Translations under genes and position numbers: made by a program
Shown: positions 25,962-56,161 of the stretch, piece after piece
How the letters are laid out: every line of letters begins with the position of its first letter
Position numbering within the stretch: position 1 is the first letter of the stretch
NCBI GenBank assembly: GCA_946965045.2
Contig: OX337233.1
Coordinates: 372,001-436,000, forward strand
Length of the DNA stretch: 64,000 nt
Origin: Epithemia pelagica
Lineage: Eukaryota; Protista; Bacillariophyta
Direction: 5' to 3'
The notes under the pieces: generated by a model
Told to the model about the DNA's origin: nothing
The model's input: the letters and a program-made list of their open reading frames with translations, nothing else
Database searches by the model: none

Positions 25962-27632
25962 ATGGACTCTTCCAAGTCCAACCGCGTTGTCCATCCAGTC
26001 TCTACCAACCCAAGGGACACTCCTGGCGCTGCAATTGCTGGTGCGGTCGGTCCGATCGCTCCAAGCGCTCAGTACCACTACGGTGCAAACCAAACAACAA
26101 CAATCAAACAGATAACCCTTTGCAAGGGCAAGAAGGATGATTCGTATTATAGCAAGGGCAAAGGAAAAGGCAACGGCAAAGGCAAAGGAAAGGGCGACTA
26201 CTCTGACTACAAAAAGGGCAAAAAGGATAAGAGCAAGGACGACAATGATGGCAAAAAGGGCAAAAAGCAAAAGAAGGAACCCAAGTGCCTCACCATTGGC
26301 GAATTGGCCGAAAGCTCTGAGGATTTCACCACGCTGGTGGGTGCACTCAATGCGGTTGACTTGTGGGAAGATGTCAATGATCCGGAAGCCGAGATAACCA
26401 TTTTCGCTCCCACCAACAATGCCTTTGACGAGATTCCAGAAGGTACCATCGACTTGGACGACTTGTTGTCCGTTTTGTTGTATCATGCAGTAGAATGCAA
26501 GGTCACATCCAGTGACTTGTTGGGAGTTGGTGTCTCTCCCATTACCGTCCCTACGGCACTAGAAGACAACACGTTTAATGTCGTGATCGACGGACACGAA
26601 ATCTTTATTCAAGGCGACGCCAACAATGTGGACGATCTCCCTCAAGTGATTGAAGCCGATATCGAGGCTTGCAATGGAGTGGTCCACGTGGTGGACAAGA
26701 TCATTTTGCCCGTGTTGGACGAGGAGCCTCCGGTACCGACCGATCCTCCCATTTTGACAATTGTCGAAAACCTACCGGGGTTTAATACTTTGTTTTCCAT
26801 CCTCAACATTACGGGAAACGGTCAGCTCATTGATGATGCCGACGATGGACCAGTCACAGTCTTTGCTCCGACCGACGATGCCTTTGCCAAACTCGGATTC
26901 TTTCTCAATTATTTGGCAGCAGATCCTCGACTCTTGTCCCTTGTTCTTCAGTACCACGCTGTTCCTGGAGTCTTGTCGGCAGAATTCTTGTCTACAGACC
27001 CTCCTCCCTTTATCTTTTCGCTCGGTGACGAACTCATTCGACCCGTGTTGGGAGATATGGGTCAGCTCTTCCTCCAAGGTACCAACAATGACCCAAACAA
27101 CCTTCCCATGGTTGGACCGGTGGATATTACGGCTTCCAACGGTATTGTCCATGTGATTGATGAAGTCCTCCTCCCCGAGTTGCCCATTGCCGCCACTCTG
27201 ACTTTTACCGGCTTTTCCTATCTATCAGATGCCCTCCATCGCACGGGATTGACGGCAGGTTGGAATATGATTTGTAAAACACTCACCGTCTTTGCTCCCA
27301 CCGATGCAGCCTTTGAAGCGCTCGGTCAAGCGACTCTGAACGCAGTCTTTGCCGACATTCCATTGTTGACGGAAATCTTGCAACTTCATGTGATCGAAGG
27401 TCAATACTTGGATAGTCTTAGTCTAGTTGCGTTGAGCGTCTATGGACAGGGCAATTTCACCACGGGCTCGGGAGACACGGTGGAAGTGACTGCGGATCTT
27501 GCGGATGGCAGTGTGTTTGTGGCAGGACCGGGCAACGACGAACCAGCTCAAGTCGTTCAAGCCGATATTAATGTCTATGGGAGCAGTGTTCTTCATGCCA
27601 TTGACAAGGTTCTGTTGCCAATTCTGAATTAA
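25962..27632 (+). CDS. FAS1-a: fasciclin protein with K/G/Y-rich segment and 3 FAS1 domains, no signal peptide (556 aa)
   Basis: TIFAPTNNAF / ACNGVVHVVDKIILP motifs occur three times. First in-frame ATG is at 25962; the start is uncertain. Confidence 0.85.
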   Translation: MDSSKSNRVVHPVSTNPRDTPGAAIAGAVGPIAPSAQYHYGANQTTTIKQITLCKGKKDDSYYSKGKGKGNGKGKGKGDYSDYKKGKKDKSKDDNDGKKGKKQKKEPKCLTIGELAESSEDFTTLVGALNAVDLWEDVNDPEAEITIFAPTNNAFDEIPEGTIDLDDLLSVLLYHAVECKVTSSDLLGVGVSPITVPTALEDNTFNVVIDGHEIFIQGDANNVDDLPQVIEADIEACNGVVHVVDKIILPVLDEEPPVPTDPPILTIVENLPGFNTLFSILNITGNGQLIDDADDGPVTVFAPTDDAFAKLGFFLNYLAADPRLLSLVLQYHAVPGVLSAEFLSTDPPPFIFSLGDELIRPVLGDMGQLFLQGTNNDPNNLPMVGPVDITASNGIVHVIDEVLLPELPIAATLTFTGFSYLSDALHRTGLTAGWNMICKTLTVFAPTDAAFEALGQATLNAVFADIPLLTEILQLHVIEGQYLDSLSLVALSVYGQGNFTTGSGDTVEVTADLADGSVFVAGPGNDEPAQVVQADINVYGSSVLHAIDKVLLPILN

Positions 27633-27697
27633 AAACCAGGACGACACCCAAAAGACGACGACCAGCTATATATTCGTATATCTCACAATGCTAGAGA

Positions 27698-27730
27698 CCA
27701 TGGCACCTTGTACAGTGTTGGTGCTGTTGT
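27698..27730 (+). promoter_or_regulatory. Conserved 3'-flank hairpin motif of the FAS1 genes (copy 1 of 6)
   Basis: ATGGCACC-N12-GGTGCTGT. Homologues at 31233-31260, 32529-32554, 35629-35656, 44922-44949 and, on the - strand, 53319-53346. Confidence 0.55.
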
Positions 27731-27879
27731 TCGGGCCCAGCTACGAAACGTTCTTGAGACCGAAAAGGAAGGGCAACAAACACATATTCTTACTACCTAA
27801 ATTACGACTACTCAAGGCTCTTGACAAACAATAGCTCTGCTCAACAATCATAATTCATGTACTTGGGCACATCCTTCTT

Positions 27880-28748: not shown

Positions 28749-28809
28749 GACCGTGTTGGATGGTACTTTTTTGCTGGTCGTTACAGGCTCGGGTGGATTT
28801 GGTTTTTCA

Positions 28810-29060: not shown

Positions 29061-29629
29061 CAAACAAGTTCCCGGTTCTCCTAAAAATCTCAGAACTGAA
29101 ATCTTGGAAACGGTCGCAGAAGCGACCCGAATACGGCTGAGCGGCGGTCGTTCGTCGTTTCTCATGATGAAGTTTCCACGAGCGATCGTGACTCAGAGAA
29201 AAATGTCTCTACCGAGAAACAGACATGTCGTTTCCGAGTCTTCCCTCCAGTACGAGCTAAGCAAAAGGCGCGGGTTTTCGAGGTCCCACATGGGAACTCC
29301 GACGAACTGCCGATACCAGAGAATACCCACGTCAAAACTCGGCGCATGACGAAATTCAAACGAAACATTATATAAGTCACGGTCGGCAGTGGGCAAGACC
29401 AACAATGGACATTTGGCAAGATCCGATTTGAATGCAGTCCGATATCAACGTTCACCAACGGATAGGGAATGCGGATCCCGAGTAGCTTCCATAACTAACG
29501 AGCAGGTGGAGTTGGAGGATCGTTGGATGGTGATTGGCCGCGCGCGGCATGACGCGCAGGCACAGCTTTTCGCTCCTCGGTTTTCTCACAATTTCTTGTT
29601 TGGATCGTCTCATAATCTTTGCCTCGATC

Positions 29630-31147
29630 ATGATTGCATCACTCCTTCAAAACACCTTGCTCGCCGCTTCTCTGTTCTCATCGGCCATTGCCGCAGGCGA
29701 CCATGCTCTGACCGCGTCCCGAGCATTGGGCGCGGCCGAATTCAGCTGTCCCACTACGGATGAGGAAGGTCGTGGATTGCGAGCCCGCTATGTGCCTCCT
29801 CCCGCACCCCAAGAGTGTCAAACCATTGGGGAAATTGTGCAAGGCAACCCCATGTTTTCCATCTTGGCCATTGCCTTGGAAGGAGTGGGCTTGTTGGATG
29901 CCGTCAGTGACAAGGACGCCACCTTTACCGTGTTTGCGCCCACCGACGATGCCTTTGCCAATGTGGATCCAGACTTGCTGCAACTCTTGTTGGACAATCC
30001 CGATACCTTGTTGGCTGAAGTTTTGTTGTATCATGTCCTTCCCTGCAAAGTCACTTCGGTCGACCTTGTGAGCCTTCATGCCTCACCCATTACCATTACC
30101 ACGGCGGCGTCGCTCGACGACAATACCTTTGACGCCATTGTGTGCCCCGAAGGTGTCTTTTTGCAAGGCGATGGCAATGCGGCGGATAGTTTCCAAGACC
30201 TCCCTCAAGTGATTGATTTTGACGTGGAGGCCTGCAATGGTGTCATTCATGTCATTAACCAGGTCATTATTCCGGCGGTCGAAGTGCCCCTTCCCACCAT
30301 TTTTGGAATTGCCCAAGAAGCCGCTGGCTTTACCACCTTGGTGGCTCTGTTGGAAGCGACGGGTCTCGATGAGGCTGTGGACGACCCGGATGCTTCCTTG
30401 ACCGTCTTTACCCCCTCGGACGCTGCCTTTGCTCTCGTGGACGGCGACTTTGTCAATTACCTCTCGGCCAATACGGATATCTTGAGTTTGATTCTCACCT
30501 ACCATGTCGTGGCCGGCGTCTTGACCTCGCAAGACTTGGTGGCCCATCCGGCTCCGACCGTCGTGACCTTGGCCGAGCAAACAATTACTCCGGACGTTCG
30601 CACCGAGGGTCTCGTTTTGGAAAATGTCAACAATGTTCCGGCCCTCGTGGAACTGCCCGATGTGCAGGCCTCGAATGGAATGGTCCATGCCATTAACAAG
30701 GTCCTGGTCCCCCTGTTGCCCGTCGATGCCACGGCCGCGCTCAATGGATTCACCGTCTTTAATACGGCCATCCAGACGGCTGGTTTGACGGCCACGTTCA
30801 ATTCCTTGACGGCCGACTTTACCGTTTTGGTTCCCACCAATGAGGCCTTTTTGGCCTTGGGCGATACCTTGGAAACTGTTCTCCAAGATGTGGAGACCTT
30901 GACCAAAATTTTGGCCACGCACGTCATTCCCGGTCCGGGACTGCCGAGTTCCAAAGTGTTGGAATTGACCGACATTACTACAACCTTGTCGGAAGTTCCC
31001 TTGAAGGTCAAGGTTCGCGATACCGGTCTCTTTATTGCCGCCCCGGGCAATGGAGGAGATGGAGCCAAGGTGGTGAATGTCGATATCAAAGCCTTGGGCG
31101 ACAGTATCATTCATGTCATTGATACCGTCCTTTTGCCCGGAGCCTAA
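29630..31147 (+). CDS. FAS1-c: secreted fasciclin, 3 FAS1 domains (505 aa)
   Basis: Signal peptide MIASLLQNTLLAASLFSSAIAA, RAL and RGL motifs, three TVFAPT..NGVIHVI domains. No K-rich segment. Confidence 0.92.
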   Translation: MIASLLQNTLLAASLFSSAIAAGDHALTASRALGAAEFSCPTTDEEGRGLRARYVPPPAPQECQTIGEIVQGNPMFSILAIALEGVGLLDAVSDKDATFTVFAPTDDAFANVDPDLLQLLLDNPDTLLAEVLLYHVLPCKVTSVDLVSLHASPITITTAASLDDNTFDAIVCPEGVFLQGDGNAADSFQDLPQVIDFDVEACNGVIHVINQVIIPAVEVPLPTIFGIAQEAAGFTTLVALLEATGLDEAVDDPDASLTVFTPSDAAFALVDGDFVNYLSANTDILSLILTYHVVAGVLTSQDLVAHPAPTVVTLAEQTITPDVRTEGLVLENVNNVPALVELPDVQASNGMVHAINKVLVPLLPVDATAALNGFTVFNTAIQTAGLTATFNSLTADFTVLVPTNEAFLALGDTLETVLQDVETLTKILATHVIPGPGLPSSKVLELTDITTTLSEVPLKVKVRDTGLFIAAPGNGGDGAKVVNVDIKALGDSIIHVIDTVLLPGA

Positions 31148-31417
31148 TTAGGTATCCTCCGAAACGATGCGCACACCCCACTCTCCCATAGTATTATATT
31201 GGGAAATCCTGAACAAACACGGAACCGACTCCATGGCATTTTGTGGGAAATAAATGCTGTTGTCACGAGTCGCAACCTAGAGCAGAACTGTCCATCATAG
31301 TTTTGTCTTGTCTCTATTACTCCTTCGCACTAGAACTGCCCCATTCGGTACGGACGAGGCACTCTAGGAACAGGTCGGATGGGGTAGATCAAACGAGATA
31401 CGGCCAGCACGGATCTG

Positions 31418-32466
31418 CCAGACGATCCCTGGAATGTTCTCGTTTGCCCCGACGGTGTCTTTGTACAAGGTAATGGAAACGACGTGGACCGTTTCCAACA
31501 ACTCCCTCAAGTAGTCGAGTTTGACATTCCAGCGTGCAATGGAGTCATTCATGTCGTCAACCAGGTGATTCTTCCGGCCATGGAATTGCCGAACCCGAAC
31601 TCGACACCATTTGGGGAGTTCTGGGAGCCAATGGGTTTGGCCGGCTCCGGACCATTTTGGAACTGTCAGGTCTCGATCAAGCTGTGGATGATCCCAACGT
31701 TTCCTGGACCCTCTTTGCCCCCTCCGACAATGCCCTCGGTGAACTCGAACCCGATTTTCTCACCTACCTCACCTTGAACCCCAGTGTCTTGTCCTTTCTT
31801 CTCCAATATCATGTCGTGGCCGAGGTCTTGACATTTTCCGACTTGGAGGCGCATCCGGCTCCTACAGTCGTAACCTTGACTGGTCAAGAGATTCTTGTCG
31901 AATGCGATGGACAAGACTTGACCTTGCAAGGTTTCAACGATGGCCCTCTCAATCGCACCATTGTGGAATGGGCCGACCTTGCCGCCTCGAATGGAATTGT
32001 GCATGGTATTAATAACGTGTTGATTCCAAAATTGCCCAGTATCGGAACCACCATTCTCCAGGGATATTCCTTGTTCAATCGGGCTGTGCAGATTGCCGTC
32101 TTGACCAATACCTTGAATTCCTTTACGGACGATTATACCGTTTTGGTGCCCTCCAACGAGGCATTTCGGGCCCTGGGGGATGACGTCTTGAATGCCGTAT
32201 TTTCCGACGTGAATACGTTGACCACCATTTTGGCCACGCATGTCATTCCGGGTCCTGGATTGGACCGTAAGGCCGTCTCGGAACTGACCGAGATTGCCAA
32301 TACCTGGTCGGGCATTCCCTTGAGGGTTACCACAAATGGTACAGATGTGTTCCTGGCTGCCCCTGGCAATGAGGGAGAGGGTGCCAAGGTGCAAGTGGCC
32401 GATATCGAAGCCTTGCCCAGCAGTATCATTCATGTGATTGATACCGTCCTTTTGCCTCAGGCGTAA
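31418..32466 (+). pseudogene. FAS1-d: 5'-truncated, frameshifted paralogue of FAS1-c
   Basis: PDDPWNVLVCPDGVFVQG..ACNGVIHVVNQVILPAMELP, then a 1-nt frameshift near 31590 into EPELDTIWGVL. No start codon or signal peptide. Confidence 0.82.
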
Positions 32467-32738: not shown

Positions 32739-33540
32739 GATCGACGATTGTAAGCCGAAACGCCTCGACAGAATTTTGGCCGCAACGGAGATTTCAACGA
32801 CAAGAAAATCCAAACGGAGAAGCAAGCAACTCTTTACTTGATCGACGATTGTAAGCCGAAACGCCTCGACAGAATTTTGGCCGCAACGGAGATTTCAACG
32901 ACAAGAAAATCCAAACGGAGAAGCAAGCAACTCTTTACTCGATCGACGATTGTAAGCCGAAACGCCTCGACAGAATTTTGGCCACAACGGAGATTTCAAC
33001 GACAAGAAAATCCAAACGGAGAAGCAAGCAACTCTTTACTTGATCGACGATTGTAAGCCGAAACGCCTCGACAGAATTTTGGCCGCAACGGAGATTTCAA
33101 CGACAAGAAAATCCAAACGGAGAAGCAAGCAACTCTTTACTTGATCGACGATTGTAAGCCGAAACGCCTCGACAGAATTTTGGCCACAACGGAGATTTCA
33201 ACGACAAGAAAATCCAAACGGAGAAGCAAGCAACTCTTTACTTGATCGACGATTGTAAGCCGAAACGCCTCGACAGAATTTTGGCCGCAACGGAGATTTC
33301 AACGACAAGAAAATCCAAACGGAGAAGCAAGCAACTCTTTACTTGATCGACGATTGTAAGCCGAAACGCCTCGACAGAATTTTGGCCGCAACGGAGATTT
33401 CAACGACAAGAAAATCCAAACGGAGAAGCAAGCAACTCTTTACTTGATCGACGATTGTAAGCCGAAACGCCTCGACAGAATTTTGGCCGCAACGGAGATT
33501 TCAACGACAAGAAAATCCAAAGGGAGAAGCAAGCAACTCT
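32739..33540. repeat. 101-bp tandem array, 8 copies
   Basis: GATCGACGATTGTAAGCCGAAACGCCTCG starts at 32739, 32840, 32941, 33042, 33143, 33244, 33345 and 33446. Units 3 and 5 share a G>A variant. Confidence 0.97.
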
Positions 33541-33985
33541 CTATGTGAGATCGTGACAACAAGTCATAGGGCGCACCCTTGTCCGTTGACCATGAGACGC
33601 CGAGTCTTCTTTCCAGTACGAGCTAAGCAAAAGGCGCGGGTTTTCGAGTTCCTCCGACGAACTGCCGATACCAGAGAATACCCACGTCAAAACTCGGCGC
33701 ATGACGAGGTTCAAACGAAACATTCTATAATTCACGGTCGGCAGTGGGCAAGACCAACAATGGACATTTGGCAAGATCCGATTTGAATGCAGTCCGGTAC
33801 CAACGTTCACCAACGGATAGCGAGCGAGTTCTGTAGTACAGCTTCCATAAGTAGCGAGCAGGTGGAGTTGGTGGATCGTTGGATGGTGATTGGCCGCGCG
33901 CGGCATGACGCGCAGGCACAGCTTTTCGCTCCTCGGTTTTCTCACAATTTCTTGTTTGGATCGTCTCATAATCTTTGCCTCGATC

Positions 33986-35557
33986 ATGATTGCATCACTC
34001 CTTCAAAACACCTTGCTCGCCGCTTCTCTGTTCTCATCGGCCATTGCCGCAGGCGACCATGCTCTGACCGCGTCCCGAGCATTGGGCGCGGCCGAATTCA
34101 GCTGTCCCACTACGGATGAGGAAGGTCGTGGATTGCGAGCCCGCTATGTGCCTCCTCCCAAGGGAAAAGGAAAAGGCAAGGGCGACTACTACAAGAAGGG
34201 CAAGAAGGACAAGAGCAAGGACGATGATGATGGCAAAAAGGGCAAAAAGCAGAAAAAGCAACCCAAGTGCCTCACGATTGGCGAATTGTTTGAAAGCTCG
34301 GAGGATTTCACCACGCTGGTGGAGACACTCAAGTTTGTTGACTTTTGGGAAGCGGTGAATGATCCAGAAGTCGAGCTGACAATTTTCGCTCCCACCAACG
34401 ATGCCTTTGCGGGTGCTCCAGAAGGCACCATCGGCTTGAACACATTGTCGCGCGTTTTGTCCTATCATACTGTGGACTACAAGGTCACGTCCAGTGATTT
34501 GTTTGGAGCGGGTGCTTCTACCATAACCATCCCTACTGCCTTCGACGACAACACCTTTGATGTTGTGATCAAGGGACATGATATCTTTATTCAAGGTGAC
34601 GCCAATGATGTGGAGGATCTCCCTCAAGTGATTGCCGCAGATCTTTATGCGTGTAATGGAGTGGTGCATGTGGTGGACCAGGTGATTCTCCCCAAGCTGG
34701 TTCTTCCCACCATTTTGGAACTCTGCCAAGATTGCTCTAACACCATGGTGTCCCTTTTGGAACTGACGGAGTTGGATGCCGTCGTGGACGATCCGGATGC
34801 TTCCTTGACCCTCTTTGTGCCCATCGAAGACGCCTTTGGTCAATTGGATCCGGAATTTCTCGGCTACTTGGTAAACAACACAGATGTCTTGAGTTTGATT
34901 CTCAAGTTCCATGTTGTCGGCAAGTTCTTGGCCGCAGAAGACTTGGTCGCCCATCCGCCCCCGACAGTCGAAACCTTGGCCGAACAAGAGATTTCTCCCG
35001 AATTTGATGGCACAGACTTGTTCTTGTCCGGGTTCAACAATGACCCGGCCAATCTTCCCATCCTGGTAGGCGCCGACTACCTTGCCTCGAATGGTAATGT
35101 CCTTTTTATCGACAAGGTATTGGTCCCCAAGTTGCCCGTGGGTGGAACAGCCGCGCTCAAGGGACTCAGCTTGTTCAATACCGCCTTGGCCGTGGCTGGG
35201 TTGACCGAGACCTTTAATTCCTTGACGGACAGCTTTACCATCCTGGCGCCCACCGACGACGCCTTTTTGGCCTTGGGGGATACCTTGACAGAGGTCCTCG
35301 CCGATGTGGATACCTTGACGACCATTTTAGCCACGCACGTCATTCCCGGTCCAGGTCTCCAGAGTCCGGCCGTGTTGGAATTGACCGAGATTACTAGTAC
35401 CTTGTCGGGCATTCCTTTGACGGTCACGGTTCGCGACACGGGTCTCTTTATTGCCGGCCCGGGCAATGCGGGAGATGGAGCCAAGGTGATTGGTGCCGAT
35501 ATGGAAGCCTTGCCGGACAGTATCATTCATGTGATTGATACAATTCTCTTGCCATGA
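33986..35557 (+). CDS. FAS1-e: chimeric secreted fasciclin (523 aa), FAS1-c leader on a FAS1-f body
   Basis: N-terminus identical to FAS1-c up to YVPPP, then KGKGKGDYYKKGKK and 3 FAS1 domains close to FAS1-f. Confidence 0.92.
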   Translation: MIASLLQNTLLAASLFSSAIAAGDHALTASRALGAAEFSCPTTDEEGRGLRARYVPPPKGKGKGKGDYYKKGKKDKSKDDDDGKKGKKQKKQPKCLTIGELFESSEDFTTLVETLKFVDFWEAVNDPEVELTIFAPTNDAFAGAPEGTIGLNTLSRVLSYHTVDYKVTSSDLFGAGASTITIPTAFDDNTFDVVIKGHDIFIQGDANDVEDLPQVIAADLYACNGVVHVVDQVILPKLVLPTILELCQDCSNTMVSLLELTELDAVVDDPDASLTLFVPIEDAFGQLDPEFLGYLVNNTDVLSLILKFHVVGKFLAAEDLVAHPPPTVETLAEQEISPEFDGTDLFLSGFNNDPANLPILVGADYLASNGNVLFIDKVLVPKLPVGGTAALKGLSLFNTALAVAGLTETFNSLTDSFTILAPTDDAFLALGDTLTEVLADVDTLTTILATHVIPGPGLQSPAVLELTEITSTLSGIPLTVTVRDTGLFIAGPGNAGDGAKVIGADMEALPDSIIHVIDTILLP

Positions 35558-37001
35558 GCCTAACAACTCAGAAAAAAAGATGCTGCCTAGCTAAAAAATA
35601 ATGATGAACAAAGAAACGAATCGGCTCCATAGCAGTTTGTGTGGATTCCATGCTGTTGTAAAAAGTGGGGAGCCGGTCGCTCAACTACCTAGTACATAAA
35701 ATGTCTCTACAACACCATTCCTGATGGACCTGCACGACGACTTGTGTATATCATACGAGGCACTCGTACCGACTTTCGACACGACTTGAGGTCGCTGTCG
35801 ACTACTACCAAGGTCACTCGAGGTTGTCCTGGTGCCTACTACGCAAGGACGAGACGTTATGGGTTTTGTGGAGACCCATCGTGCCGATTTTACTTTGTGC
35901 GGCCCACCCTTATCCGTATTCTGTATCATCCTGAGTGTGTGTCGTCATTCTGGATACTGTCCTGCTCTTGTTTGTTGTGAGCATGCCAAACATCAGAGGA
36001 AGGAACCAAAGCGATGAGGTGGACCTGTATTCCGACGCTATCGTACGGCGAGAATGGACCGAATGGGTCATTACTCGACCGCATAGCCATGCTAGTGTTG
36101 GTCGCTGACGGATGCTGGACAGACGTCGATGGACTTGGGGTCTGTTCACTGTACGAAGGGCCAGCTCCTACCTGTCCCTACCACTTTCAACTGATTTCAC
36201 GACTACCTGTAGGTACTGTTTTTCCCCCAGTACGCCGGACGACCGTCCCACCAACCGCATTCGCCTCGCTCAGCACTTGGGAACCGGGCATCTGCTCGCA
36301 CTTCTCTCTAGCTAGTAAATAGTAGAGTCGTATTCGAATGTCTATTCGTACACTGACTGGTCGTAGGATGGCCCCACAACTACTGCTGCTGCCTGTAGGA
36401 ATCGTACGTGGCGTTGGGAAGGACTGATAGTAATTATTTTTTGCGTTCCAGGACGCCGTGCGGTGGCGTCTCGTTTTTTGGCAAACGAACGAAGCTACCT
36501 ACCAACCTATTGTACTTGTCGTACCAACAAACAACGCACCTACCACAGTGAGTGAGTAGTCAAGGGAGGCGAAACAATCCCGGTTCACCCCTCAACACAC
36601 ATAAACACACATACACAATCTCTCTCCCAGAACACGACGAGAATCCATTGATTTTTCACCCTTTTGTTGTTTCATTCGCCTTGATCCACAAGATTGAAGC
36701 AGCAACCCCGCCTCTCAAACTACTCAAACGAGGCACTCCTATATCTAGAAGGACAGAGAAGGACGAGACTGTTGTGTGTTTGGACTCAAACGTTGTTTCA
36801 GAGCCACACAACAATTGTACCAGAAACAATTCGATCCACCACAATCATCAACAAGCACTCACACAATACTCTGCTTGTCGTGGAACCACCACCGACCAGA
36901 GCAGCACCAGCACCAGTAGCACCATTGTCCCCCTATTCTTCTTCTCCCCCAACAACAAAAACCGGACCCCAACAACACCGTTGAGTCAAGCAGCCGCCAG
37001 C

Positions 37002-43165: not shown

Positions 43166-44854
43166 ATGAAGTTCAGCTTTGGTATTGCAACCTTGTCGAC
43201 AGTTTTGCTGCTTCTCTGCCATGGGATCAGTGTGGCACAAGAAACTACCGTGACGGAGAATGGGCCTCATCGCAGAGCTTCCACAAGTGCCATGTTCATG
43301 TGCCCTGAAGATGATCACTATCGTCGTCATCACCGTGAGCTTGGCAAAAAAGACAGTTATGGAAAGGGGAAGAAGGATGATTCGTATTACAGCAAGGGCA
43401 AAGGAAAGGGCAAGGGCGACTATTACAAGAAGGGCAAGAAGGACAAGAGCAAGGATGACGATGATGGCAAAAAGGGCAAAAAGCAGAAAAAGCAACCCAA
43501 GTGTCTGACTATTGGTGAAATAGCCGAGAGTTCGGAGGACTTTACCACCTTGGTGGAGGCACTCAAGGCGGTTGACTTGTGGGAAGATGTCAATGATCCA
43601 GAAGCCGAGCTGACCATTTTCGCTCCCACCAACAATGCCTTTGCGGATGCTCCAGAGGGTACCATCGACTTGAACACATTGTTGACCGTTTTGTTGTATC
43701 ACGCAGTGGATTGCAAGGTCACGTCCAGTGATTTGCTTGGAGCGGGTGCTTCTACCATTACCGTCCCTACTAAAAACGACGACAATACCTTTGATGTTGT
43801 GATCAAGGGACATGATATCTTTATTCAAGGCGACGCCAATGATGTGGAGGATCTCCCTCAAGTGATTGCCGCAGATCTTTATGCCTGTAATGGAGTCGTT
43901 CACGTGGTGGACAAGATCATTTTGCCCGTGTTGGACGAGGAGCCTCCGGTACCGACCGATCCTCCCATTGTGCTGGTTCCTCCCACCATTTTGGGACTCG
44001 TCCAAGAAAATGGCTTTGACACCTTGGTGTCCCTTTTGGAACTGACGGAGTTGGATGCCGCCGTGGACGATCCGGATGCTTCCTTGACTGTCTTTGCGCC
44101 CACCGAAGACGCCTTTGGTCAATTGGCTCCGGAATTTGTCTACTATTTGGTAAACAACATAGATGTCTTGAGTTTGATTCTCAAGTTCCATGTCGTCGGC
44201 AAGGTCTTGACGGCACAAGACTTGGTCGCCCATCCGCCCCCGACAGTCGAAACCTTGGCCGAACAAGACATTACCCCCGAATTTGATGGCACCGCCTTGT
44301 TCTTGTCCGGGTTCAACAATGACCCGGCCAATCTTCCCATGGTGGAAAAACAATTGGTGTATCTCGATGCTTATGCCTCGAATGGTATTGTCCATGTCAT
44401 CAACAAGGTATTGGTCCCCAAGCTGCCCGTGGGTGGAACAGCCGCGCTCAAGGGACTCACCCTGTTCAATTTTGCCTTGGCCGTGTCTGGGTTGAAAGAG
44501 ACCTTTAATTCCTTGACGGACAGCTTTACCATCCTGGCGCCCACCGACGACGCCTTTATGGCCTTGGGGGATACCTTGACAGAGGTCCTCGCCGATGTGG
44601 ATACCTTGACGACCATTTTGGCCACGCACGTCATTCCCGGTCCAGGTCTCCAGAGTCCGGTCGTGTCGGAATTGACCGAGATTACTAGTACCTTGTCGGG
44701 CATTCCTTTGACGGTCACGGTTCGCGATACCGGTCTCTTTATTGCCGGCCCGGGCAATGCGGGAGATGGAGCCAAGGTGATTGGTGCCGATATGGAAGCC
44801 TTGCCGGACAGTATCATTCATATCATTGATACAGTTCTCTTGCCAGGAGCCTAA
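43166..44854 (+). CDS. FAS1-f: secreted fasciclin with RXL motif, K/G/Y-rich segment and 3 FAS1 domains (562 aa)
   Basis: MKFSFGIATLSTVLLLLCHGISVA signal peptide; RRHHREL; KKDSYGKGKKDDSYYSKGKGKGKGDYYKKGKK. Confidence 0.93.
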   Translation: MKFSFGIATLSTVLLLLCHGISVAQETTVTENGPHRRASTSAMFMCPEDDHYRRHHRELGKKDSYGKGKKDDSYYSKGKGKGKGDYYKKGKKDKSKDDDDGKKGKKQKKQPKCLTIGEIAESSEDFTTLVEALKAVDLWEDVNDPEAELTIFAPTNNAFADAPEGTIDLNTLLTVLLYHAVDCKVTSSDLLGAGASTITVPTKNDDNTFDVVIKGHDIFIQGDANDVEDLPQVIAADLYACNGVVHVVDKIILPVLDEEPPVPTDPPIVLVPPTILGLVQENGFDTLVSLLELTELDAAVDDPDASLTVFAPTEDAFGQLAPEFVYYLVNNIDVLSLILKFHVVGKVLTAQDLVAHPPPTVETLAEQDITPEFDGTALFLSGFNNDPANLPMVEKQLVYLDAYASNGIVHVINKVLVPKLPVGGTAALKGLTLFNFALAVSGLKETFNSLTDSFTILAPTDDAFMALGDTLTEVLADVDTLTTILATHVIPGPGLQSPVVSELTEITSTLSGIPLTVTVRDTGLFIAGPGNAGDGAKVIGADMEALPDSIIHIIDTVLLPGA

Positions 44855-45689
44855 CAACTCAGAAAAAAAGATGCTGCCTAGCTAAAAAAATTTATAATGA
44901 ACAAAGAAACGAATCGGCTCCATGGCAGTTTGTGTGGATTCCATGCTGTTGTAAAAAGTGGGGAGCCGGTCGCTCAACTACCTAGTAAAGAAAATGTCTC
45001 TACAACACCATTCCTGATGAACCTGTAAGACCACTTGTGTATGCCATACGAGGGACTCGGACCTAGTTTCGACACGATGCTGTCACCTAGGCCACTAGAG
45101 ATCGTCCTGGTGCCTAGGAGTACTACGCAAGGACGAGACGTTATGGGTTTTGTGGAGACCCATCGTGCCGTATTTTACTTTGTGCGGCCCACCCTTATCC
45201 GTATTCTGTATCATCCTGTGTGTGTGTCGTCATTCTGGATACCGTCCTGCTCTTGTTTGTTGTGAGCATGCCAAACATCAGAGGAAGGAACCAAAGCGAT
45301 GAGGTGGACCTGTATTCCGACGGCGAGAATGGACCGAATGGGTCGTTACTCGACCGCATAGCCAGGCTAGTGTTGGTCGCTGACGGATGCTGGACAGACG
45401 TCGATGGACTTGGGGTCTGTTCACTGTACGAAGGGCCAGCTCCTACCTGTCCCTACCACTTTCAACTGATTTCACGATTACCTGTAGGTACTGTTTTTCC
45501 CCCAGTACGCCGGACGACCGTCCCACCAACCGCATTCGCCACGTCCAGCACTTGGGTACCGGGCATCTAATCGACTCCGCGTATTTCTCTCTCTAGCTCT
45601 AGTAAATAGTAGAGTCGTATTCGTCTGTCTATTCGTACACTGACTGGTCGTAGCGAAACAATCCCGGTTCACCCCTCAACACACACATA

Positions 45690-48600
45690 CGAGCTCCACC
45701 AATCGATATGGGTAACCGTAGTGGCCCGTGCTTCACGTTTCCGATTCTCGGTGAAACTTCCGGCCCTACGAGATTCACTACACTATACATTTTCCTAGAG
45801 TACGAGTACTCGTAAGATGAATTAGTCCGTGAACTGATGACATCGTTCCTCGGCACAACGATGCACTCTCTTTTGCCCTCAACATTCACCTTTGCCCTCA
45901 ACATTCACCATGGTGAGGAGGCGCTTGCCCATTCGGTATCAAACAGTACAAATCGCCTCATCTACTCTATTAGTTACATAGATCTATAGGAAATCTAACT
46001 TGTATGTGCTTCGTAGTGCATCGTTCACGATCCTCATCCATCCGATGCGTTCATCCATCCGACGCTCGTCAACCCATTTTGCCTTTGTTGTTTGTTGATT
46101 GTCGTTCCATCCAATCATGTCAAACAAGGTACGAAAAGGGTCCTTCGTCTCCGTTGCACGCAGCGACCAGGGATCAATGGGTGGTTTTGGCTTCGTCCGA
46201 AAACTCAAACGAAAAAGAAAGGACGACAGTGACGACGAAGCTGTTACTGTTGTTGACTCGCAGTCAACAGCACCCGACCAAACCACATTGGTTGACGTCG
46301 AGTATACTATCGACAATCGATGCTCCCAGGATGTTTCATCCGATCGTGTCTCTCACGCAATGATCGAGCCAACGGCTCGTCGCCGCCCTGGCGACCAAAC
46401 GACCCGCCCCTCGCTTCGTTCAACTCGTCATGATCCCCGACTGCAAGCCAGTTTGATTGCTGCGACGACAGCGACGGCAGATGAACCCACGCCTGATGAT
46501 CCTCCAGGACCCCCAACCAATTCAACCACCTTCTTGCTTGATCTTTGCACCAAGAACAATCACGACAAGGCCTTCGAGATCCTTGAAGATAAGTGCAACA
46601 AGGAATGTGGATACGGTTGGTTGAGAAAGATTGAGCATACAACGAACAGATCTGGTGCATTTGACTCAAAATACGACCCAAACAAATCATCCGATGAAAG
46701 GCAGCCGCTGCACTCTGCCTCCGAAAAGCAACTTGCTTGCATGCTCAACCTTGCAATGAAGCCTCATTGCTACAATGTGCGCTTTATTTCATACGCATGG
46801 GGGATCAGCCGTAAAGCTCTATACAAATGGATAGAGGACTTTTCCAAAAATCCCTTGCCGCAACCCCGAAAGACTCGAAGTGACAAGGGCTTAACGCTGT
46901 TGACCTCAGAGAAGAAACGACGATCCACGTGGACCCCTAGATTTATCTTTATGAAAGACTATCAAGTGAAAAATCCTGACTCAAATATGACTCAAGCTAG
47001 GGATGCGTGGAAAACTATCGAAGATGATGAAGATGCTATATCTCCCTATAAGGCCTTGAGTGATCAATGGCATCGTGATCAAGGAGCTTTTCTTCTATCG
47101 GAGATTCAACGACTTCTCAAGGATACTGGCGGCTCTGTCTCCTGGAATACGATAGCAACCTTGGTTGCAGGCTCTGGTAACGCACAACTTATCAGTGGTG
47201 AAACAATCCGAAAATTCTGCATGTCATTGCCAGACTCGTCATATAAAAGCACACGGATCCTACCCCACCTAGATCAAGCAAATAAAGAGAGACGATACTG
47301 GTGGGCAATTCAGTTTTGGATCTTCTGGAAGTCAGCGAAGACCTTTAACAATGTCCAAGTTGTTCTTGTTCATATGGACGAGAAATGGTTTTGGTCAATC
47401 GTGGTGCGGCGAAACAATAAGTCTATTCCGATGTTGGGAATAAAGCCAGTTGTGCATTCAGTCCATCACAAGAATCACATCGAAAAGACAATGGGGATTG
47501 TTGCCGTCGCATATGCCCCAAAGCAGAACGACTGGAAGCAAGGTGGAACACCATTCACGGTTAGCCTGGTACGAGCAGGCCGTAAGGTCAAAGCGTCGCG
47601 CGATACCTACCGGCGTGTCTACAAAGATGACGGGTCGTATCACTATCCAACAATCCAAGAAAACTTACTTCGTAAGAAGGGTGAACTCTACTTCAAGGGC
47701 ATGGAAGTTACGGGTAGTTCTAGAGGAACACGGAAAGAACCCAAGTTCTCTCTACTACATGATTTTTATGAGTCGGTTCATCTACCGAACCTAGACATGT
47801 TAGCAGAAGAAGTGACTTCAATGGTCGGATCGCATTGCCGAGTGGTGATTGTCGAGCAATTTGATGGAGCGGGTCCTCATAAAGAAGACAAGCTCACCAG
47901 GTACATCGAAGGCCAATTTGCGGCACGTCAATGGTATCGAGCTCCACAGCCTGCCAACTCGCCCCTTACCAATGTCCTAGATGATTGTGTCTTCCCGGCA
48001 CTTTCGAAGCATGTGTCTCGGGAACAGGGAATATCAAACAAGTGTCAAGCGTATTCTAACGATGAAATATGGGAGTCGGTCCAAAAGTGCTATGAATCCT
48101 TTCCCATGGATGTTCTCGCAAGAGCATTTGTGCGACATCACCAGATCGTAAACGCAATTGCAATCGAAAAGGGTGGGGACAAGTTTGCTCAAGACCATGA
48201 TCTACATTTCAATGTTCGGAATTGTTGTTCACCTACTTTCAGCGAAGATGGAGTTGCAACTGGAGTTGAGATGGTCCCAATTTTTGATGAACATAATGAA
48301 CGCGATGACAGACCAAGTTTTCGCCATCCAGATCCGATGATTACGCAAGATCTCTTGGAAGAAAATCTTTTGCGAATGAAGACCATTCAGCTTGAAAGGC
48401 TGATCGACTGGATGCCTGAAGATCATGAATGGTTTGAAGATGTCGCTGGTGCCCATGCCATCCTGAGAGCGAGAGAGGACGGAGACTTCGAGTCAGACGG
48501 AGAAGTAGAAACAGAGGATGAACTATAGTTTGATTGTTGCATGTTGTCTGTTGTCATCATTGTCTTGTTGTATCTAGTTTTTGATTGTTGTGGTCGTCGT

Positions 48601-49976: not shown

Positions 49977-50374
49977 TACACACACATACACAATCTCTCT
50001 CCCAGAACACGACGAGAATCCATTGATTTTTCACCCTTTTGTTGTTTCATTCGCCTTGATCCACAAGATTGAAGCAGCAACCCCGCCTCCCAGACTACTC
50101 AAACGAGGCACTCCTATATCTAGAAGGACAGAGAACGACGAGACTGTTGTGTGTTTGGACTCAAACGTTGTTTCAGAGCCACACAACAATTGTACCAAAA
50201 ACCATTCGATCCACCATACTCATCAACAAGCACTCACACAATACTATGCTTGTCGTGGAACCACCACCGACCAGAGCAGCACCAGCACCAGAAGCACCAT
50301 TGTCCCCCTATTCTACTTGCCCCAACAACAAAAACCGGACCCCAACAACACCGTTGAGTCAAGCAGCCGCCAGC

Positions 50375-52498
50375 ATGATGACCGCAACAGCAACAGCAAA
50401 CTGCGAGCAACCAGTAGCACCAGAACCGGACCCATCCGACACTCTTGAGAATGACAAGGCCGCCGACACTTGTTTGACACGTCCCCATTTGGTCAAGCGC
50501 AAATCGGCACCCGCCGGTTTGCGATGGAATCCACGTGATCTGGACGACGACGAAGACCCGACCGAACTGAATTACGAGGATTATTTGGACGATGATACCA
50601 CAACCAATCATTGGGACGATCCCATTGTCTTGACGCCCATTTTGACCATGCCATTGAGCAGCAGCAACAACAACAAGAACAACCAAAACAACCCTCGCAG
50701 TACTACATACAACCATTCCAAACAAGCCTACAATCCCAATACTCAGTATTCCAATACTCCGTATTCCACCACAAAACCATTGTCGGATCACCAAAAGTCG
50801 TCGACTGGCAAACACAACATGACGGAAGGTTGTGATTCCACGATTACGACGACGGCATCGTCCAGTTCGAACAACTCTACCAATACTACGACCCTTTTGT
50901 CTCCTGCATCCACCAAACCTGCTGCTACTACTGCTACCACTGCTACCTCCCTTGCCACACCCTCCAGTCCTGTGCGAACCTCCCCACCAACAACGACGAC
51001 GAATACCAAGAAAAGCAATTTGGATTATTTGGAGCAAACCATTCAGCAGCAACAAGACACTTGTGCCAGTCTCGAACAAGGCGTGCAAGTGCATTTGGAT
51101 CGGGCCGTGGCCCGCTACCAAGCGCACAATACCGTGGGAGCCTGTTTGGCTTGGAAACGCATGCATCAATTGCAACGCGAACAGGAGCACTTGACCAAGG
51201 CCGTGTCGTATTTGCAACAATTGCTAGTTCAGCAACAAGAACAACAAGAATTGAAACTGCAGCAGCAACAACAGCAAGAACAGCAGCAATTCAAACTGCA
51301 ACACCAACACCCAGAACCATCGCAAGTGTCGGCCCCCAACTCTCCGCTTCGCAAAGTGTCGTCTCGCGGTGGATTATTGTCGAGTCGGGGAACCAAACAG
51401 GGCTGGTCCTCCCGTGGCCGGTTGCGTCGATTCCACCATTCCGACAGTAGTACCAAGGATGCGGGATATCATTCCGATGGCAATGCTCCCACCCATCATC
51501 ATGATGATGATGACGACGAGGACGATTTGGAGGAAGAAGAAGACGAAACCAAAGATCCCAGTCTTGATATGAATCCCTTGCTCTTGTCTCCCGTCAAGGC
51601 TCCTCGAGGGTTGTGGCAAGCTGCTGCCAGTACTAGTCAGAGGCAACAGTCCTCCTCCAAGAGTCACAGCAGTCACTTTGCGTCTCTGCCCTCGTTGGAA
51701 GGATTGTATCAATTGGATGTTCCCTTGGCCAACACCACCACCAAGACAAGAACGACAGCAGCAAGTCCACCCGCATCCCCCGGAACTCACCACCACAAGG
51801 CATCGTCGTCGAAAAAACAAGGACGGCAATTCTTGGGCAAACTCATTGCTCGTCGATCGCAATTGGGGGGATTGGATTTGGCCACCACGCCCGCAACGAC
51901 TCGTACCACACGGCCATGGGACGAATCCACGCAACGACGCCGGCAACGGCGACGTCAACGACGTCGCCAACAACGACACGAACAACGCGAACGACACGAA
52001 CAAGTCGTCCGACAATTGCAGCAAGGGCAACCATTGTTGCCCGCACAAGCTGCCACGGACGAATCATCACTACCTCAGTCTCCCACCACCAAACAACCAC
52101 CAGCAGGACGACGACGCTTGCGAGGGACAGGTGGAGGCAGTAGTCGTCAAGCGCAGAGTCCCGGACCCTCGTCCTCCTTGTCCTTTTTGCGATTGGACGT
52201 GTCCCATCGCAACGATAGTAATAATAATGATGAGATTGGAATTACCGATTCCCAGTCGCCGTCGTCTCTTCAGCAGCAACAAGAACGAGTGTGGTTGCAA
52301 GAACAAATTGACATGATTTTGAATACCCACATTCAAGACGAACCCGACACTCCTCTGGGCTCGAATCACCACAACCACAACAGCAACAACAGCAATAACA
52401 GCAAGTCTCGATCCGTCCCATCCGAGCAAGAGGCCATTCTGCAAGAATTGGCCGCCCTCGTGGCGCAGCAAACCGGAACCACAAGCACAACCACTTAA
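50375..52498 (+). CDS. Q/T/S/D-rich disordered protein with coiled coil, copy B (707 aa)
   Basis: Paralogue of 37002-39206; the indels between copies preserve frame. Confidence 0.8.
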   Translation: MMTATATANCEQPVAPEPDPSDTLENDKAADTCLTRPHLVKRKSAPAGLRWNPRDLDDDEDPTELNYEDYLDDDTTTNHWDDPIVLTPILTMPLSSSNNNKNNQNNPRSTTYNHSKQAYNPNTQYSNTPYSTTKPLSDHQKSSTGKHNMTEGCDSTITTTASSSSNNSTNTTTLLSPASTKPAATTATTATSLATPSSPVRTSPPTTTTNTKKSNLDYLEQTIQQQQDTCASLEQGVQVHLDRAVARYQAHNTVGACLAWKRMHQLQREQEHLTKAVSYLQQLLVQQQEQQELKLQQQQQQEQQQFKLQHQHPEPSQVSAPNSPLRKVSSRGGLLSSRGTKQGWSSRGRLRRFHHSDSSTKDAGYHSDGNAPTHHHDDDDDEDDLEEEEDETKDPSLDMNPLLLSPVKAPRGLWQAAASTSQRQQSSSKSHSSHFASLPSLEGLYQLDVPLANTTTKTRTTAASPPASPGTHHHKASSSKKQGRQFLGKLIARRSQLGGLDLATTPATTRTTRPWDESTQRRRQRRRQRRRQQRHEQRERHEQVVRQLQQGQPLLPAQAATDESSLPQSPTTKQPPAGRRRLRGTGGGSSRQAQSPGPSSSLSFLRLDVSHRNDSNNNDEIGITDSQSPSSLQQQQERVWLQEQIDMILNTHIQDEPDTPLGSNHHNHNSNNSNNSKSRSVPSEQEAILQELAALVAQQTGTTSTTT

Positions 52499-52716
52499 AC
52501 ACTTACTACCACTGCAATGACGAATGACAGGACCACGACCAACAACAATGATATGCCCTCGATTCCATCAGTGTTACGGACGACAACCCTCATGACCGAC
52601 TTCCCACAATTACTACCTCTAGAATAGACAAGAGATGGACAAGACGTTGGCTGGGGGAAAGTATTGGGGAAGAAAGCACATAGGAACCATAGTATAATCA
52701 ATCTATCTAGACCAAG

Positions 52717-52760
<44 letters not shown>
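52717..52760. repeat. (AAC)n microsatellite, ~14 units
   Basis: Read directly; much shorter at the homologous site in copy A (~39440). Confidence 0.95.
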
Positions 52761-53154
52761 AGATAAGATGATACAGACTCGACTTGTTCCTTCCAGAATA
52801 GTGAGAACAAAAGGGCCATAGACCGACCCCCCTGGTTCTACGACACTGCATTCCTTCCAGAAATATCGATATTGCCATGCTACAAATGCTACCACATTGT
52901 TGTGGATCCAACCTCGAGGAGGAATCAAGAGAGATGGACACTAGGAGTAGGTAGAAGAAACAGAGTATTCATTGCGCTATACTCAAGCCGTTTTACAGAC
53001 ACATTTGTCGACCCCCCAAAATACACAAGAGGGTAGACGTGTCGTCGTTTTTCGTTTGGTTGGTGGTGCCACAGACACACACAAAGAAGCATCCTTTGGT
53101 GATGATGGTTGGTTGGTTGTCATCCATCCATCCATCCCTCTCGTACTACTCCCT

Positions 53155-53214: not shown

Positions 53215-53269
53215 AATGCTCACTCAATATAGATGCCGGCACATTTTCGTGTATTACGCCTGATCCATG

Positions 53270-53519
53270 GGAAGGATTTTCCAGTCTCAAGAATGTTTCG
53301 TAGCTCTGGGCCCCAACAACAGCACCAAGAATGTACAAGGTGCTATGGTCTTTAGCATTGTGCGATAATGTGCGATAAACTAATGTGGAGGTGGTCGTCG
53401 TCTTTTTGTTGATGTCCTGGTTTTTAGTTCCGAATTGGCAACAGAAACTTGTCAATGGCATGAAGAACACTGTCTCCATAGACATTAATATCGGCTTGAA
53501 CTATTTGAACTGGTTCGTC
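53270..53519 (-). pseudogene. Fragment of a FAS1-a-type C-terminus plus its 3' flank
   Basis: DEPVQIVQADINVYGDSVLHAIDKFLLPIRN* (53519-53424) versus FAS1-a DEPAQVVQADINVYGSSVLHAIDKVLLPILN*. The flank is homologous to 27633-27770. Confidence 0.85.
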
Positions 53520-53551
53520 GTTGGTTGTCATTTATCCATCGATCCATACCT

Positions 53552-56161
53552 CTAGGGCAACAACACCGTATCCACGACATGCATCCAACTGTTCCACGCC
53601 GGTAGATCGTCTCGTGTCACTTGAGCGGCGGCTCCAACTGCTTCATTACCAGGGCCAGCCACAAATAGATCTGTTCCAGTCAAGGTCGCCGAGAGAGGCA
53701 CACCGGAAGCGGCTGGGACACTGGTCGTACCGCCTTCGATGGCCGCCACAATCTGGCTGCTGGTGAGGGCGGTACCGTTAATGACATGGGTCAACAAAAT
53801 TTCCGTCAAGGTGACCTTGTCATTGAGAATGGCAACAAGGCCCTCCACGGTCGCAAAGGCCTCATTGGTGGGAACAAAGACGGTAAACATCTCTGCCTGC
53901 GAGTTTAAGAGACTGGTCAAATCGGCCGCTTCGACGGCCGCGACAAAGGTACTAAAGTCTCGGACGACGGCCGTGGCAGCGACGGGCAAAAGTGGAAGAA
54001 TTACCCTGTCAATGGCGTGAACAATACCGTTGGATGCGACAATGTCAAAGGGTTCAATAATGGTGGGAAGATTGTCGCGAGGATTGTTAAAGGTAATGAG
54101 GTCAATGCTGCCGTCATCTTGCTTTAGGGGACGAATACTGTTGGCAAAGGATCGCAAGACGGCCGCTGGCGTTTCCGAAACCATTTCGGTCGTGTTGGTT
54201 TCGTTGATAAAGGCATGACCTTGCACCACCATAAATAAAATATCAGGATTGTCGGTCAAATAGTCGAGAAAGCTACCAAGTTGGGCAAACGCAGCGTTGG
54301 TGGGGGCAAAGGCGGTCAACACCTCGTCCGTCGGCTCATCAATGGACGTAATTAGTCTGGTTCCCTGCAGGGCTCCCAAAAGGGTCGAAAACTCATCGCC
54401 CAAGTTTTCTACCACTTGGGCAATCGTAGGTGGCAACAGGACAGTATCAATGACATGAATGACGCTGTTAAAGGCCGGAATATCCACTTCCACCACCTGT
54501 GCTCCCAGTCCTTGGTTGCCACCGGCAGCGACAAAGAGCATGTCTCCGTCCAAGACAGCTTCCAAGGTAACTCCCGACTCGGAAACCAGAGTGCTTTGTC
54601 CGGCTTCTACCGCCCCCAATATCGCAGTACTGGTCAATCCCAAGTCCGGAATGACATGAGTCTCCAAGATGCGAGTCAACAATCTCGGGTCGGACAGGAC
54701 GGCATTCAAGGTTGCATCGCCAAGCGCCAAAAAAGCACCATCCGTGCGCAAAAATACGGTCGAGAGGGACGCAATCGAGTTGAATTGCTCCGTCAAGCCC
54801 GCAGCTTCCACGGCAGCCGTAAAGAGTGTAAATCCCTTGAGGGCGGCAGTCGCACCGGCGGAAATGGAACCAAGAAGAAGCTGGTCAATGATATGAACAA
54901 TACCATTCGAGGCTTCAATGTCCACTGGACCAACCATGGGAAGGTTATCCGGGTCCGTGTTGGTGGCTTGAAGAAAGACTTGTCCATTCACAACAATGGG
55001 CTGGATTTTTTCACCCAGCGCCGAGAAAATAGCTTCCGGTGGATCTTGAGCGACGAGTTGTTCCGCGGTGATTACTCCCGGTACGGCATGATCGTGCAGA
55101 ATGAGAGCCACCACATCCAGATTGTTGCCCAAGTAATCCAAAAAGTACGGATCGAGTGCTTCGAAGGCTTCGTTACTGGGTGCAAAAACTGTGAAGGGTC
55201 CATCGGTGGGATCATCAATCTCCTGACTTACTCCCGTGAGTTCCAAGAACGATGCCACTTCCGAAAATCCAAGGTTTTCTCCAAGGTTAAGGATAATCTC
55301 CAAAATTGTGGGGCCCAAAACGGGCAGAATCACCTGGTCGACCACATGGACAACTCCATTGCACGCCTAAATATCGGCTTCAATCACTTGAGGGAGATCA
55401 TCCACATTATTGGCGTCGCCTTGAATAAAGATATCATGGCCCTTGATCACAACATCAAACGTATTGTCTTCAAGGGCGGTAGGGACGGTAATGGGAGAAG
55501 CACCCACTCCGAACAAATCACTGGACGTGACCTTGCATTCCACTGCATGATACAACAAAACGAGCAACAACGTGTCCTCGGTCACTGTACCTTCTTGGAT
55601 GTCGGCAAAGGCATCGTTGGTAGGAGCGAAAATGGTAAGCTCGGCTTCGGGATCATTCACCGCTTCCCACAGACCAGCCAGCTTGAGTGCCTCCACCAGG
55701 GTGGTAAAGTCCTCCGAACTCTCGGCCAATTCACCAATCGTGAGGCACTTGGGGTGCTTTTTCTGCTTTTTGCCTTTTTTGCCATCGTCGTCATCCTTGC
55801 TCTTGTCCTTCTTGCCCTTCTTGTAATAGTCGCCCTTGCCTTTTCCTTTTCCCTTGCTGTAATACGAATCATCTTTCTTGCCCTTACCGCTATCATCAAC
55901 TTTCTTGGCGCGAAGCTCACGATGACGACGATAGTAATCGTCCTCCTGTTCGTCTGGACACGTCAATATCGCAGCAGCGGAGGTTCGCCTTGGAAACGGA
56001 TCCTTCTGGAGTGGTTGGCCTTGTTGTTGTGCAGACAGTGCATGCTTGATTCGAATAGTCGTTTCTTGTGCCAAAGTGTTCCCCTGGCAGCCACTCGACC
56101 AGGGCAGCAGGACAGCCGACCAGAGTGTGGTGGTGGTCCACATTCCAAACGTCAATTTCAT
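53552..56161 (-). pseudogene. FAS1-h: fasciclin with signal peptide, RXL, K/G/Y segment and 5 FAS1 domains; single in-frame TAG at 55367-55369
   Basis: Reads EADI*ACNGVVHVVDQV where FAS1-a reads EADIEACNGVVHVVDK. The other 869 codons are open. Confidence 0.88.

Follow-up and report, generated by a model that had tools for sequence, protein, structure and literature searches.

A 64,000-nucleotide stretch of the genome of the raphid pennate diatom Epithemia pelagica (hereafter the window; C6:372001-436000 in an assembly of 60.5 Mb in 23 sequences) was found to contain six fasciclin (FAS1) genes, designated FAS1-a, -c, -d, -e, -f and -h, within positions 25962-56161 (C6:398-428 kb in a scan of the diatom's own genome). 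Four of these genes, a, e, f and h, carry a short lysine-rich block, and FAS1-c is an untagged version. Judged from its substitution pattern, the block is under strong selection and is hence functional rather than a neutral spacer. Our interpretation, which we regard as about evenly balanced between right and wrong, is that FAS1-f, and FAS1-e on one of the two haplotypes, would encode secreted FAS1 arrays whose pro-region is cut near an RxL site, leaving a Lys-specific N-terminus tethered to the silica or the organic casing of the frustule. An earlier note on the window had described the order signal peptide, RxL site, Lys/Gly/Tyr-rich block and three to five FAS1 domains; this layout proved to be real, and the block was found to contain Asp as well.

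A lysine-rich block between leader and FAS1 domains

Using the N-terminus of FAS1-f as a tblastn query, we found the block at four loci, at 43343-43501 in f, at 55748-55912 on the reverse strand in h, at 26124-26285 in a, and at 34160-34267 in e. The block is 36-55 residues long and lies between the RxL-containing pro-region (in f, h and e) and the first FAS1 domain. Lys accounts for 40-47% of its residues, Gly for 16-20%, Asp for 15-18%, Tyr for 6-9% and Ser for 3-8%, and the net charge is +11 to +13; in the 53-residue K/G/D/Y block of f, on the forward strand, the corresponding values are 42%, 19%, 17%, 9% and 8%, with a net charge of +13. Every block yielded 23-33 overlapping 14-residue windows with at least five Lys and thus contains pentalysine clusters as defined in PMC9650480 (five Lys in 12-14 residues). 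KXXK spacing occurs 8-9 times and the KK dipeptide 5-7 times in a block, while no K[SG][SG]K motif was found in it. The length of the GK run differs in copy a.

To assess conservation of the block, we aligned six leader sequences; four of them belong to the window and two to the second haplotype, which is represented by the European Nucleotide Archive (ENA) contig ctg1300l (loci L001-L003). Across the six sequences 33 block columns were invariant, as were all Lys of the shared core, with no change from Lys to Arg. Pairwise comparison of the blocks of f and h, f and a, and h and a gave 7-15 synonymous versus 1-4 non-synonymous differences, corresponding to a synonymous divergence (dS) of 0.39-1.6, a non-synonymous divergence (dN) of 0.009-0.035 and a dN/dS of about 0.02; the difference between synonymous and non-synonymous changes per site was significant in each case (Fisher p 9e-6 to 2e-11). 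By comparison, the adjoining FAS1 domain showed a dN/dS of 0.18-0.38, and the pro-region had a dN of 0.47, indicating almost free divergence. Since dS is high, recent duplication or gene conversion is ruled out as the cause of the block's conservation, and because this conservation is specific to position and to Lys, it is not what a neutral spacer would be expected to leave. With selection as strong as a dN/dS of about 0.02 indicates, it is reasonable to infer that the block is a polycationic anchoring tag.

Relatives of the leader and block were sought in three ways. A word-indexed search with residues 26-115 gave matches limited to the two haplotypes of this species; a HMMER profile run exhaustively against 1.84 billion representative proteins returned three matches, all from this species; and a protein search of the diatom's own genome (E <= 1) recovered the block at the four cluster loci only. 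In addition, a Lys-rich window was present in none (0/120) of the 120 best FAS1 homologues. As far as these searches reach, the block is an orphan confined to this species, and its N-terminal arrangement is new.

FAS1-f (43166..44854, forward strand) illustrates the complete arrangement. Its predicted signal peptide (aa 1-24/25) is followed by a pro-region (aa 26-59; 43241..43342, forward strand) that has an x-C-P motif and an acidic patch and ends in YRRHHREL, then by the block (aa 60-112) and by three FAS1 domains (Pfam E 8e-67). Five of the six Arg of f sit in the pro-region, Arg being otherwise nearly absent, and the sole RxL of the protein (in RRHHREL) falls exactly at the boundary of pro-region and block. 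The leader of h follows the same order, with a hydrophobic N-terminus, a variable pro-region with x-C-P and an acidic patch, and YRRH(H)REL directly before the block, in agreement with the earlier note, which had ascribed a signal peptide, a pro-region with a CP motif, an RxL site and a block of about 50 residues to both genes. FAS1-c and FAS1-e have a common leader of another type, MIASLL...SCPTTDEEGRGLRARY. Signal peptides were assigned by inspection and hydropathy, and by these means a hydrophobic N-terminus together with REL or RGL at the end of the pro-region was recognized in c, e, f and h and not in a. The same four genes thus have the order seen in silaffins, an endoplasmic reticulum (ER) signal peptide followed by RxL, with cleavage predicted from the motif. 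A like order of x-C-P, acidic patch and R-x-L recurs both in the c/e leader and in a distant FAS1 gene (L004) located 100 kb away on the same contig, which indicates that the leader is older than the block.

The body of these proteins is of the fasciclin type. All gene models matched Pfam PF02469 (E 1e-15 to 1e-81) in a HMMER comparison, a check that had been named together with the first description of the family. Seven open reading frame (ORF) pieces scored 57-270 bits against a curated cut-off of 22, with one to four PF02469 stretches apiece, and these tandem copies above the cut-off place the products among the fasciclin proteins. By Pfam, a, c, e and f have three FAS1 domains each, h has five (one and four on either side of an in-frame stop), and d has two in the window and three on the other haplotype. 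In the AlphaFold model of f, the three FAS1 domains had predicted local distance difference test (pLDDT) values >90 and most of residues 1-99 had values <50; the leader is accordingly modelled as disordered and the FAS1 alpha/beta fold is predicted with confidence. The latter agrees with the sequence matches to the solved FAS1 domains of TGFBIp and periostin (5nv6, 5yjh; E 4e-22, 5e-19), which were the best solved relatives. Hydropathy analysis revealed neither a transmembrane-like segment outside the FAS1 cores nor a hydrophobic C-terminal tail in any copy, consistent with the earlier statement that the proteins lack transmembrane and glycosylphosphatidylinositol tails. Overall, the cluster is best described as a lineage-specific tandem set of multi-FAS1 proteins that are predicted to be secreted.

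Proposed function of the block and alternative explanations

The features described above suggest that one branch of the cluster gained a short, disordered, net-cationic stretch, inserted upstream of the first FAS1 domain and behind a leader that is older. In the mechanism that we propose, the signal peptide would direct the protein into the ER, the pro-region would be cut off at the Arg-rich RxL site or close to it, and the lysine block would be left as the mature N-terminus. There it may serve as a Lys-specific polyanion-binding tag that, like the pentalysine clusters of silaffins, most likely fixes the FAS1 array to the frustule silica or to the organic casing, with the FAS1 domains providing an adhesive or matrix-binding surface. 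Secretion, cleavage, any modification of the lysines and the nature of the binding partner are predictions made from sequence.

Silaffins, frustulins, cingulins and silacidins have been described as showing KXXK-type clustering and as having, behind the signal peptide, an RxL motif at which an endopeptidase is likely to cut (PMC4557024). When we compared the block proteins with the silaffins tpSil3 and tpSil1 and the cingulins CinY2 and CinW2, a signal peptide, an RxL site and dense Lys clusters were common to all. However, the Lys regions of the cingulins consist of K, S and G only, with 33-48% Ser and no Asp, whereas the block has little Ser and abundant Asp; the silaffin and cingulin regions are often repeated along a fully disordered protein, whereas here a single block of 36-55 residues is fused to folded domains; and no sequence homology was detected between the block and these Lys regions. 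The Ser-rich (phosphoserine) context of silaffins is absent, Asp bringing negative charge instead, and so are the repeated K(X)2K units (X = S/G) that alternate with Trp- or Tyr-rich regions in cingulins. The silaffin/cingulin likeness proposed earlier is therefore compositional and incomplete: it extends to the Lys-cluster count and the RxL site, but Ser is scarce, Asp is abundant and the K[SG][SG]K motif is missing. We liken the block to a lysine-cluster tag in the way it may work and do not class it as a silaffin or a cingulin.

Two published proteins lend weight to the reading of the block as an anchoring tag. In Cyclotella cryptica, the most abundant soluble silica-associated protein is CcSSP1, a fasciclin protein with many SxxSSKS/KSGK motifs; proteomics placed it in the biosilica, and its fusion to green fluorescent protein (GFP) was seen in girdle bands and fultoportulae (Skeffington et al., bioRxiv 10.1101/2021.09.18.460806). 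CcSSP1 and the cluster proteins both combine FAS1 with a Lys-rich low-complexity region in a secretory protein. Compared by description, they differ in that CcSSP1 belongs to a centric diatom and has SxxSSKS/KSGK motifs, whereas the block is Ser-poor and Asp-rich, has no KSGK, and is N-terminal, placed after an RxL pro-region and before three to five FAS1 domains. The combination of FAS1 with a Lys-rich region in biosilica had thus already been published, and the cluster is not the undescribed system that it was first taken for: what is known is a fasciclin with a lysine-rich region in diatom biosilica, and what is new is the orphan block and its N-terminal arrangement. The second protein, AC3362 of Amphora coffeaeformis, is Lys/Tyr-rich with KG repeats, was picked as an adhesive candidate, and was found in the insoluble biosilica-associated matrix (PMC4220933). 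It resembles the cluster proteins in being secreted and Lys/Tyr-rich, but it lacks FAS1 domains, its sequence is repetitive and rich in proline, and it is not homologous to the block.

Several observations weigh against tethering to the frustule. No expression support was found in the protein collections, in which all matches were genome-derived (ENA, two genome contigs) and none came from transcriptomes. The block is unlike the proven silica-targeting regions in its Ser (3-8%) and Asp (15-18%) contents and in having no K[SG][SG]K, and PMC4557024 describes targeting by lysine clusters in conjunction with phosphoserines. RxL is a short motif, and cleavage could equally obey an RxxR or dibasic rule, or not happen. 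Of the four tagged copies, three carry defects on one or both haplotypes, which argues that the tagged proteins, taken together, are not under strong selection at present. Moreover, fasciclins have been reported in diatom adhesive material as well, so the target could be mucilage rather than silica (PMC10939406; bioRxiv 10.1101/2021.09.18.460806).

The last point leads to a different explanation, which we consider possible without finding it probable, namely that the proteins are extracellular adhesives or mucilage components of trails, pads or cell-cell contacts, and that the partner of the block is not silica but the substratum or an anionic polysaccharide, sulphated or carboxylated. Such binding could be electrostatic, could involve coacervation, or could rely on Lys-Tyr chemistry like that of mussel foot proteins. 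Fasciclins are listed among the putative adhesive proteins of A. coffeaeformis and Phaeodactylum tricornutum (PMC10939406; bioRxiv 10.1101/2021.09.18.460806), FAS1 genes with a raphid-diatom signature are reported in Seminavis (PMC7335047), and the mix of Lys, Tyr and Asp would suit a polyampholyte or a coacervate. However, Tyr makes up just 6-9% of the block, 3,4-dihydroxyphenylalanine (Dopa) was reported to be absent from the Amphora adhesive, the K/Y-rich Amphora candidate proved to be a wall protein (both PMC4220933), and the organism is probably pelagic. Alternatively, the block might be a removable part of the pro-peptide or an intracellular sorting or masking signal that is trimmed at KK sites and absent from the mature protein; it could then keep the FAS1 domains non-adhesive or steer them into a vesicle route. 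The disorder of the block, its position directly after the pro-region, its 5-7 KK dipeptides, and the description of pentalysine clusters as targeting signals (PMC9650480) would all fit. We nevertheless judge this improbable, as the position-specific conservation of Gly, Asp and Tyr together with that of Lys exceeds what a dibasic substrate would need, and in FAS1-e a different leader precedes what is left of the block, its 36 C-terminal residues.

Finally, the block could be a tolerated, functionless low-complexity spacer whose conservation mirrors recent duplication or gene conversion. It is true that several copies are pseudogenes or truncated, that the variation in GK run length in copy a suggests slippage, and that the block has no relatives. 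However, dS values of 0.39-1.6 against dN values of 0.009-0.035 mean that the copies are old enough and have not been homogenized by gene conversion, and the Lys/Arg and Asp/Glu exchanges and the indels expected under neutrality were almost never seen. Judged by dN/dS, this explanation is largely refuted, and we give it very little credence.

Returning to attachment at the frustule, a more specific version is conceivable, in which the block is a recently evolved, genetically encoded zwitterionic silica tag, with Asp taking the place of silaffin phosphoserine, and acts as a transferable module that makes a generic FAS1 adhesin frustule-bound. This proposal derives from the tagged and untagged pair f and c, from the chimeric gene e, and from a separate FAS1 gene with a K/G/Y tail that is conserved in Epithemia, and we offer it as a speculation that is rather unlikely to hold. 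If it were true, the birth of a biomineral-targeting signal could be traced step by step, and a compact 36-residue tag for protein display on silica would be at hand.

More generally, the signals that send proteins to diatom silica are poorly defined and rest on a few Thalassiosira proteins with Ser-rich lysine regions. The cluster supplies natural controls in the form of an untagged paralogue, decayed copies, and a chimera in which half of the block follows a different leader. Should the block target or bind silica or matrix, the rules for such signals would be wider, fasciclin domains would be linked to the pennate cell wall, and a small silica-display tag would be available; otherwise, it would still have to be explained why an orphan peptide of low complexity is under such strong selection.

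Copies, alleles and relatives of the FAS1 genes

Only two genes of the cluster, the untagged c and the tagged f, are intact on both haplotypes. FAS1-f is the sole block-bearing gene of which this is true: its allele (P0121) is intact, with an allelic dN/dS of 0.41, and an insertion on the other haplotype lengthens the pro-region by about 10 residues. FAS1-c (29630..31147, forward strand; Pfam E 3e-72; allelic dN/dS 0.17) has a predicted signal peptide and the pro-region SCPTTDEEGRGLRARY, after which three FAS1 domains follow directly, bearing out the report that c has an RxL leader without the block.

FAS1-h (53552..56161, reverse strand) has the leader, a 55-residue block and five FAS1 domains, and in the window it is interrupted by an in-frame TAG (55367-55369) inside the first FAS1 domain. 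The other haplotype (L001:10001-12610) has GAG (Glu) at this site, but a separate stop precedes the fifth FAS1 domain. Because each haplotype has a different premature stop and the allelic dN/dS is 0.60, h appears to be decaying independently on both chromosomes. FAS1-d is represented in the window by a remnant (31400..32466, forward strand) with two FAS1 domains left; compared with the other haplotype, about 0.9 kb has been deleted, and with it the last part of the leader and the bulk of FAS1 domain 1. The other haplotype encodes a 460-residue product (P0124) with three domains, and its leader is frameshifted.

FAS1-e (33986..35557, forward strand) is a natural chimera of c and f with its junction at 34159. 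In a self-BLAST comparison, 33600-34159 was 94% identical to the 5' end of c (29234-29803), and 34159-36366 was 88% identical to f (43393-45653). As a c/f recombinant, e combines a c-type upstream region and leader with an f-type body, and of the block it keeps no more than the 36 C-terminal residues. In the window the gene is intact, whereas its allele on the other haplotype carries a frameshift. FAS1-a (25962..27632, forward strand) encodes three FAS1 domains and a 54-residue block in which the GK run is expanded; its homology to f begins at 26124, and neither a signal peptide nor a pro-region is encoded in the contiguous ORF. The earlier description of a and e as sharing the block was thus correct as to its presence, but the block of e is shortened to 36 residues and that of a stands without signal peptide and pro-region. 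A spliced signal-peptide exon was considered for a; many in-frame GT..AG joins to upstream hydrophobic ORFs can be drawn, none of them supported or excluded. We also observed that a is 99.8% identical between the haplotypes (compared with L003:6330-8000), while neighbouring genes differ by a dS of 0.03-0.10, which suggests local loss of heterozygosity or a conversion tract at this locus.

The cluster is therefore young and partly decayed, and evolves by birth and death. The modular family of tagged and untagged proteins envisaged at the outset exists in both versions, but it is smaller and younger than supposed, with f as the single tagged gene intact on both haplotypes.

Members of the cluster are 51-82% identical to f. 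The nearest proteins outside it include both diatom FAS1 proteins and bacterial sequences of lipoprotein type, none with more than 34% identity. A bacterial origin of the FAS1 array was considered and not adopted: the best non-self matches (P0007-P0011) have lipoprotein-like N-termini and 31-34% identity, and diatom FAS1 proteins, including those of the own genome, are equally distant (29-32%). A published tree claims several transfers of FAS1 from bacteria to diatoms (PMC10939406). TGFBIp (beta-ig-h3) and periostin, animal proteins that are secreted and act in the matrix or in adhesion, are alike in that their tandem FAS1 domains follow an N-terminal segment containing Cys; they differ in having an EMI/CROPT domain, four FAS1 domains and no polycationic block, and identity is low.

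A further FAS1 gene, located on C17 (~2154.0-2155.4 kb; L008:1543-2913), encodes a protein in which a predicted signal peptide and two FAS1 domains are followed, at the C-terminus, by a (KGKGY/KGKGYPS)n tail of 156 residues with 31% Gly, 25% Lys and 15% Tyr. Its orthologue in Epithemia clementina (ACA910_008902; P0126) has the same architecture and 49% identity. The C17 gene and the cluster genes both join FAS1 to a Lys/Gly/Tyr-rich disordered module, and the strings GKKDS and YYSKGKG are common to both. However, the C17 module is C-terminal, repetitive, low in Asp, placed behind two FAS1 domains and present in two species, whereas the block is N-terminal, non-repetitive and confined to one species. 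Derivation of the block from the C17 tail was not adopted, as the local alignment was weak (score 82 versus 60.5 +/- 9.3 for shuffles, with 9 of 500 reaching it). Since the C17 gene, its E. clementina orthologue and the cluster all have such a fusion, FAS1 joined to disordered K/G/Y-rich modules is, as far as these sequences indicate, a recurrent arrangement in the lineage, old at the C-terminus of the C17 gene and new at the N-terminus of the cluster proteins.

Neighbouring elements in the window

A few hundred bases upstream of e and of f there is a minisatellite with nearly perfect repeats, at 32739-33540 and 42088-42979, respectively; one is built of eight units of 101 bp and the other of three units of 297 bp, and the motif AACGCCTCGACAGAATTT is common to both. 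A 3.2-kb segment is present twice, at 36602-39767 and 49977-53042, with 83% identity, and contains a low-complexity ORF of 809-884 residues without a Pfam match. Between the FAS1 genes (39984-41933; 46099-48528) we found a fragment of a Copia-type reverse transcriptase (RVT_2) and an 809-residue ORF without a Pfam match. The arrangement of the duplicated segment, the Copia fragment and the 809-residue ORF differs between the haplotypes. Elsewhere in the window, at least five Kelch-repeat genes with 75-81% identity in DNA sequence are arranged in tandem at 1864-17175 on the reverse strand.

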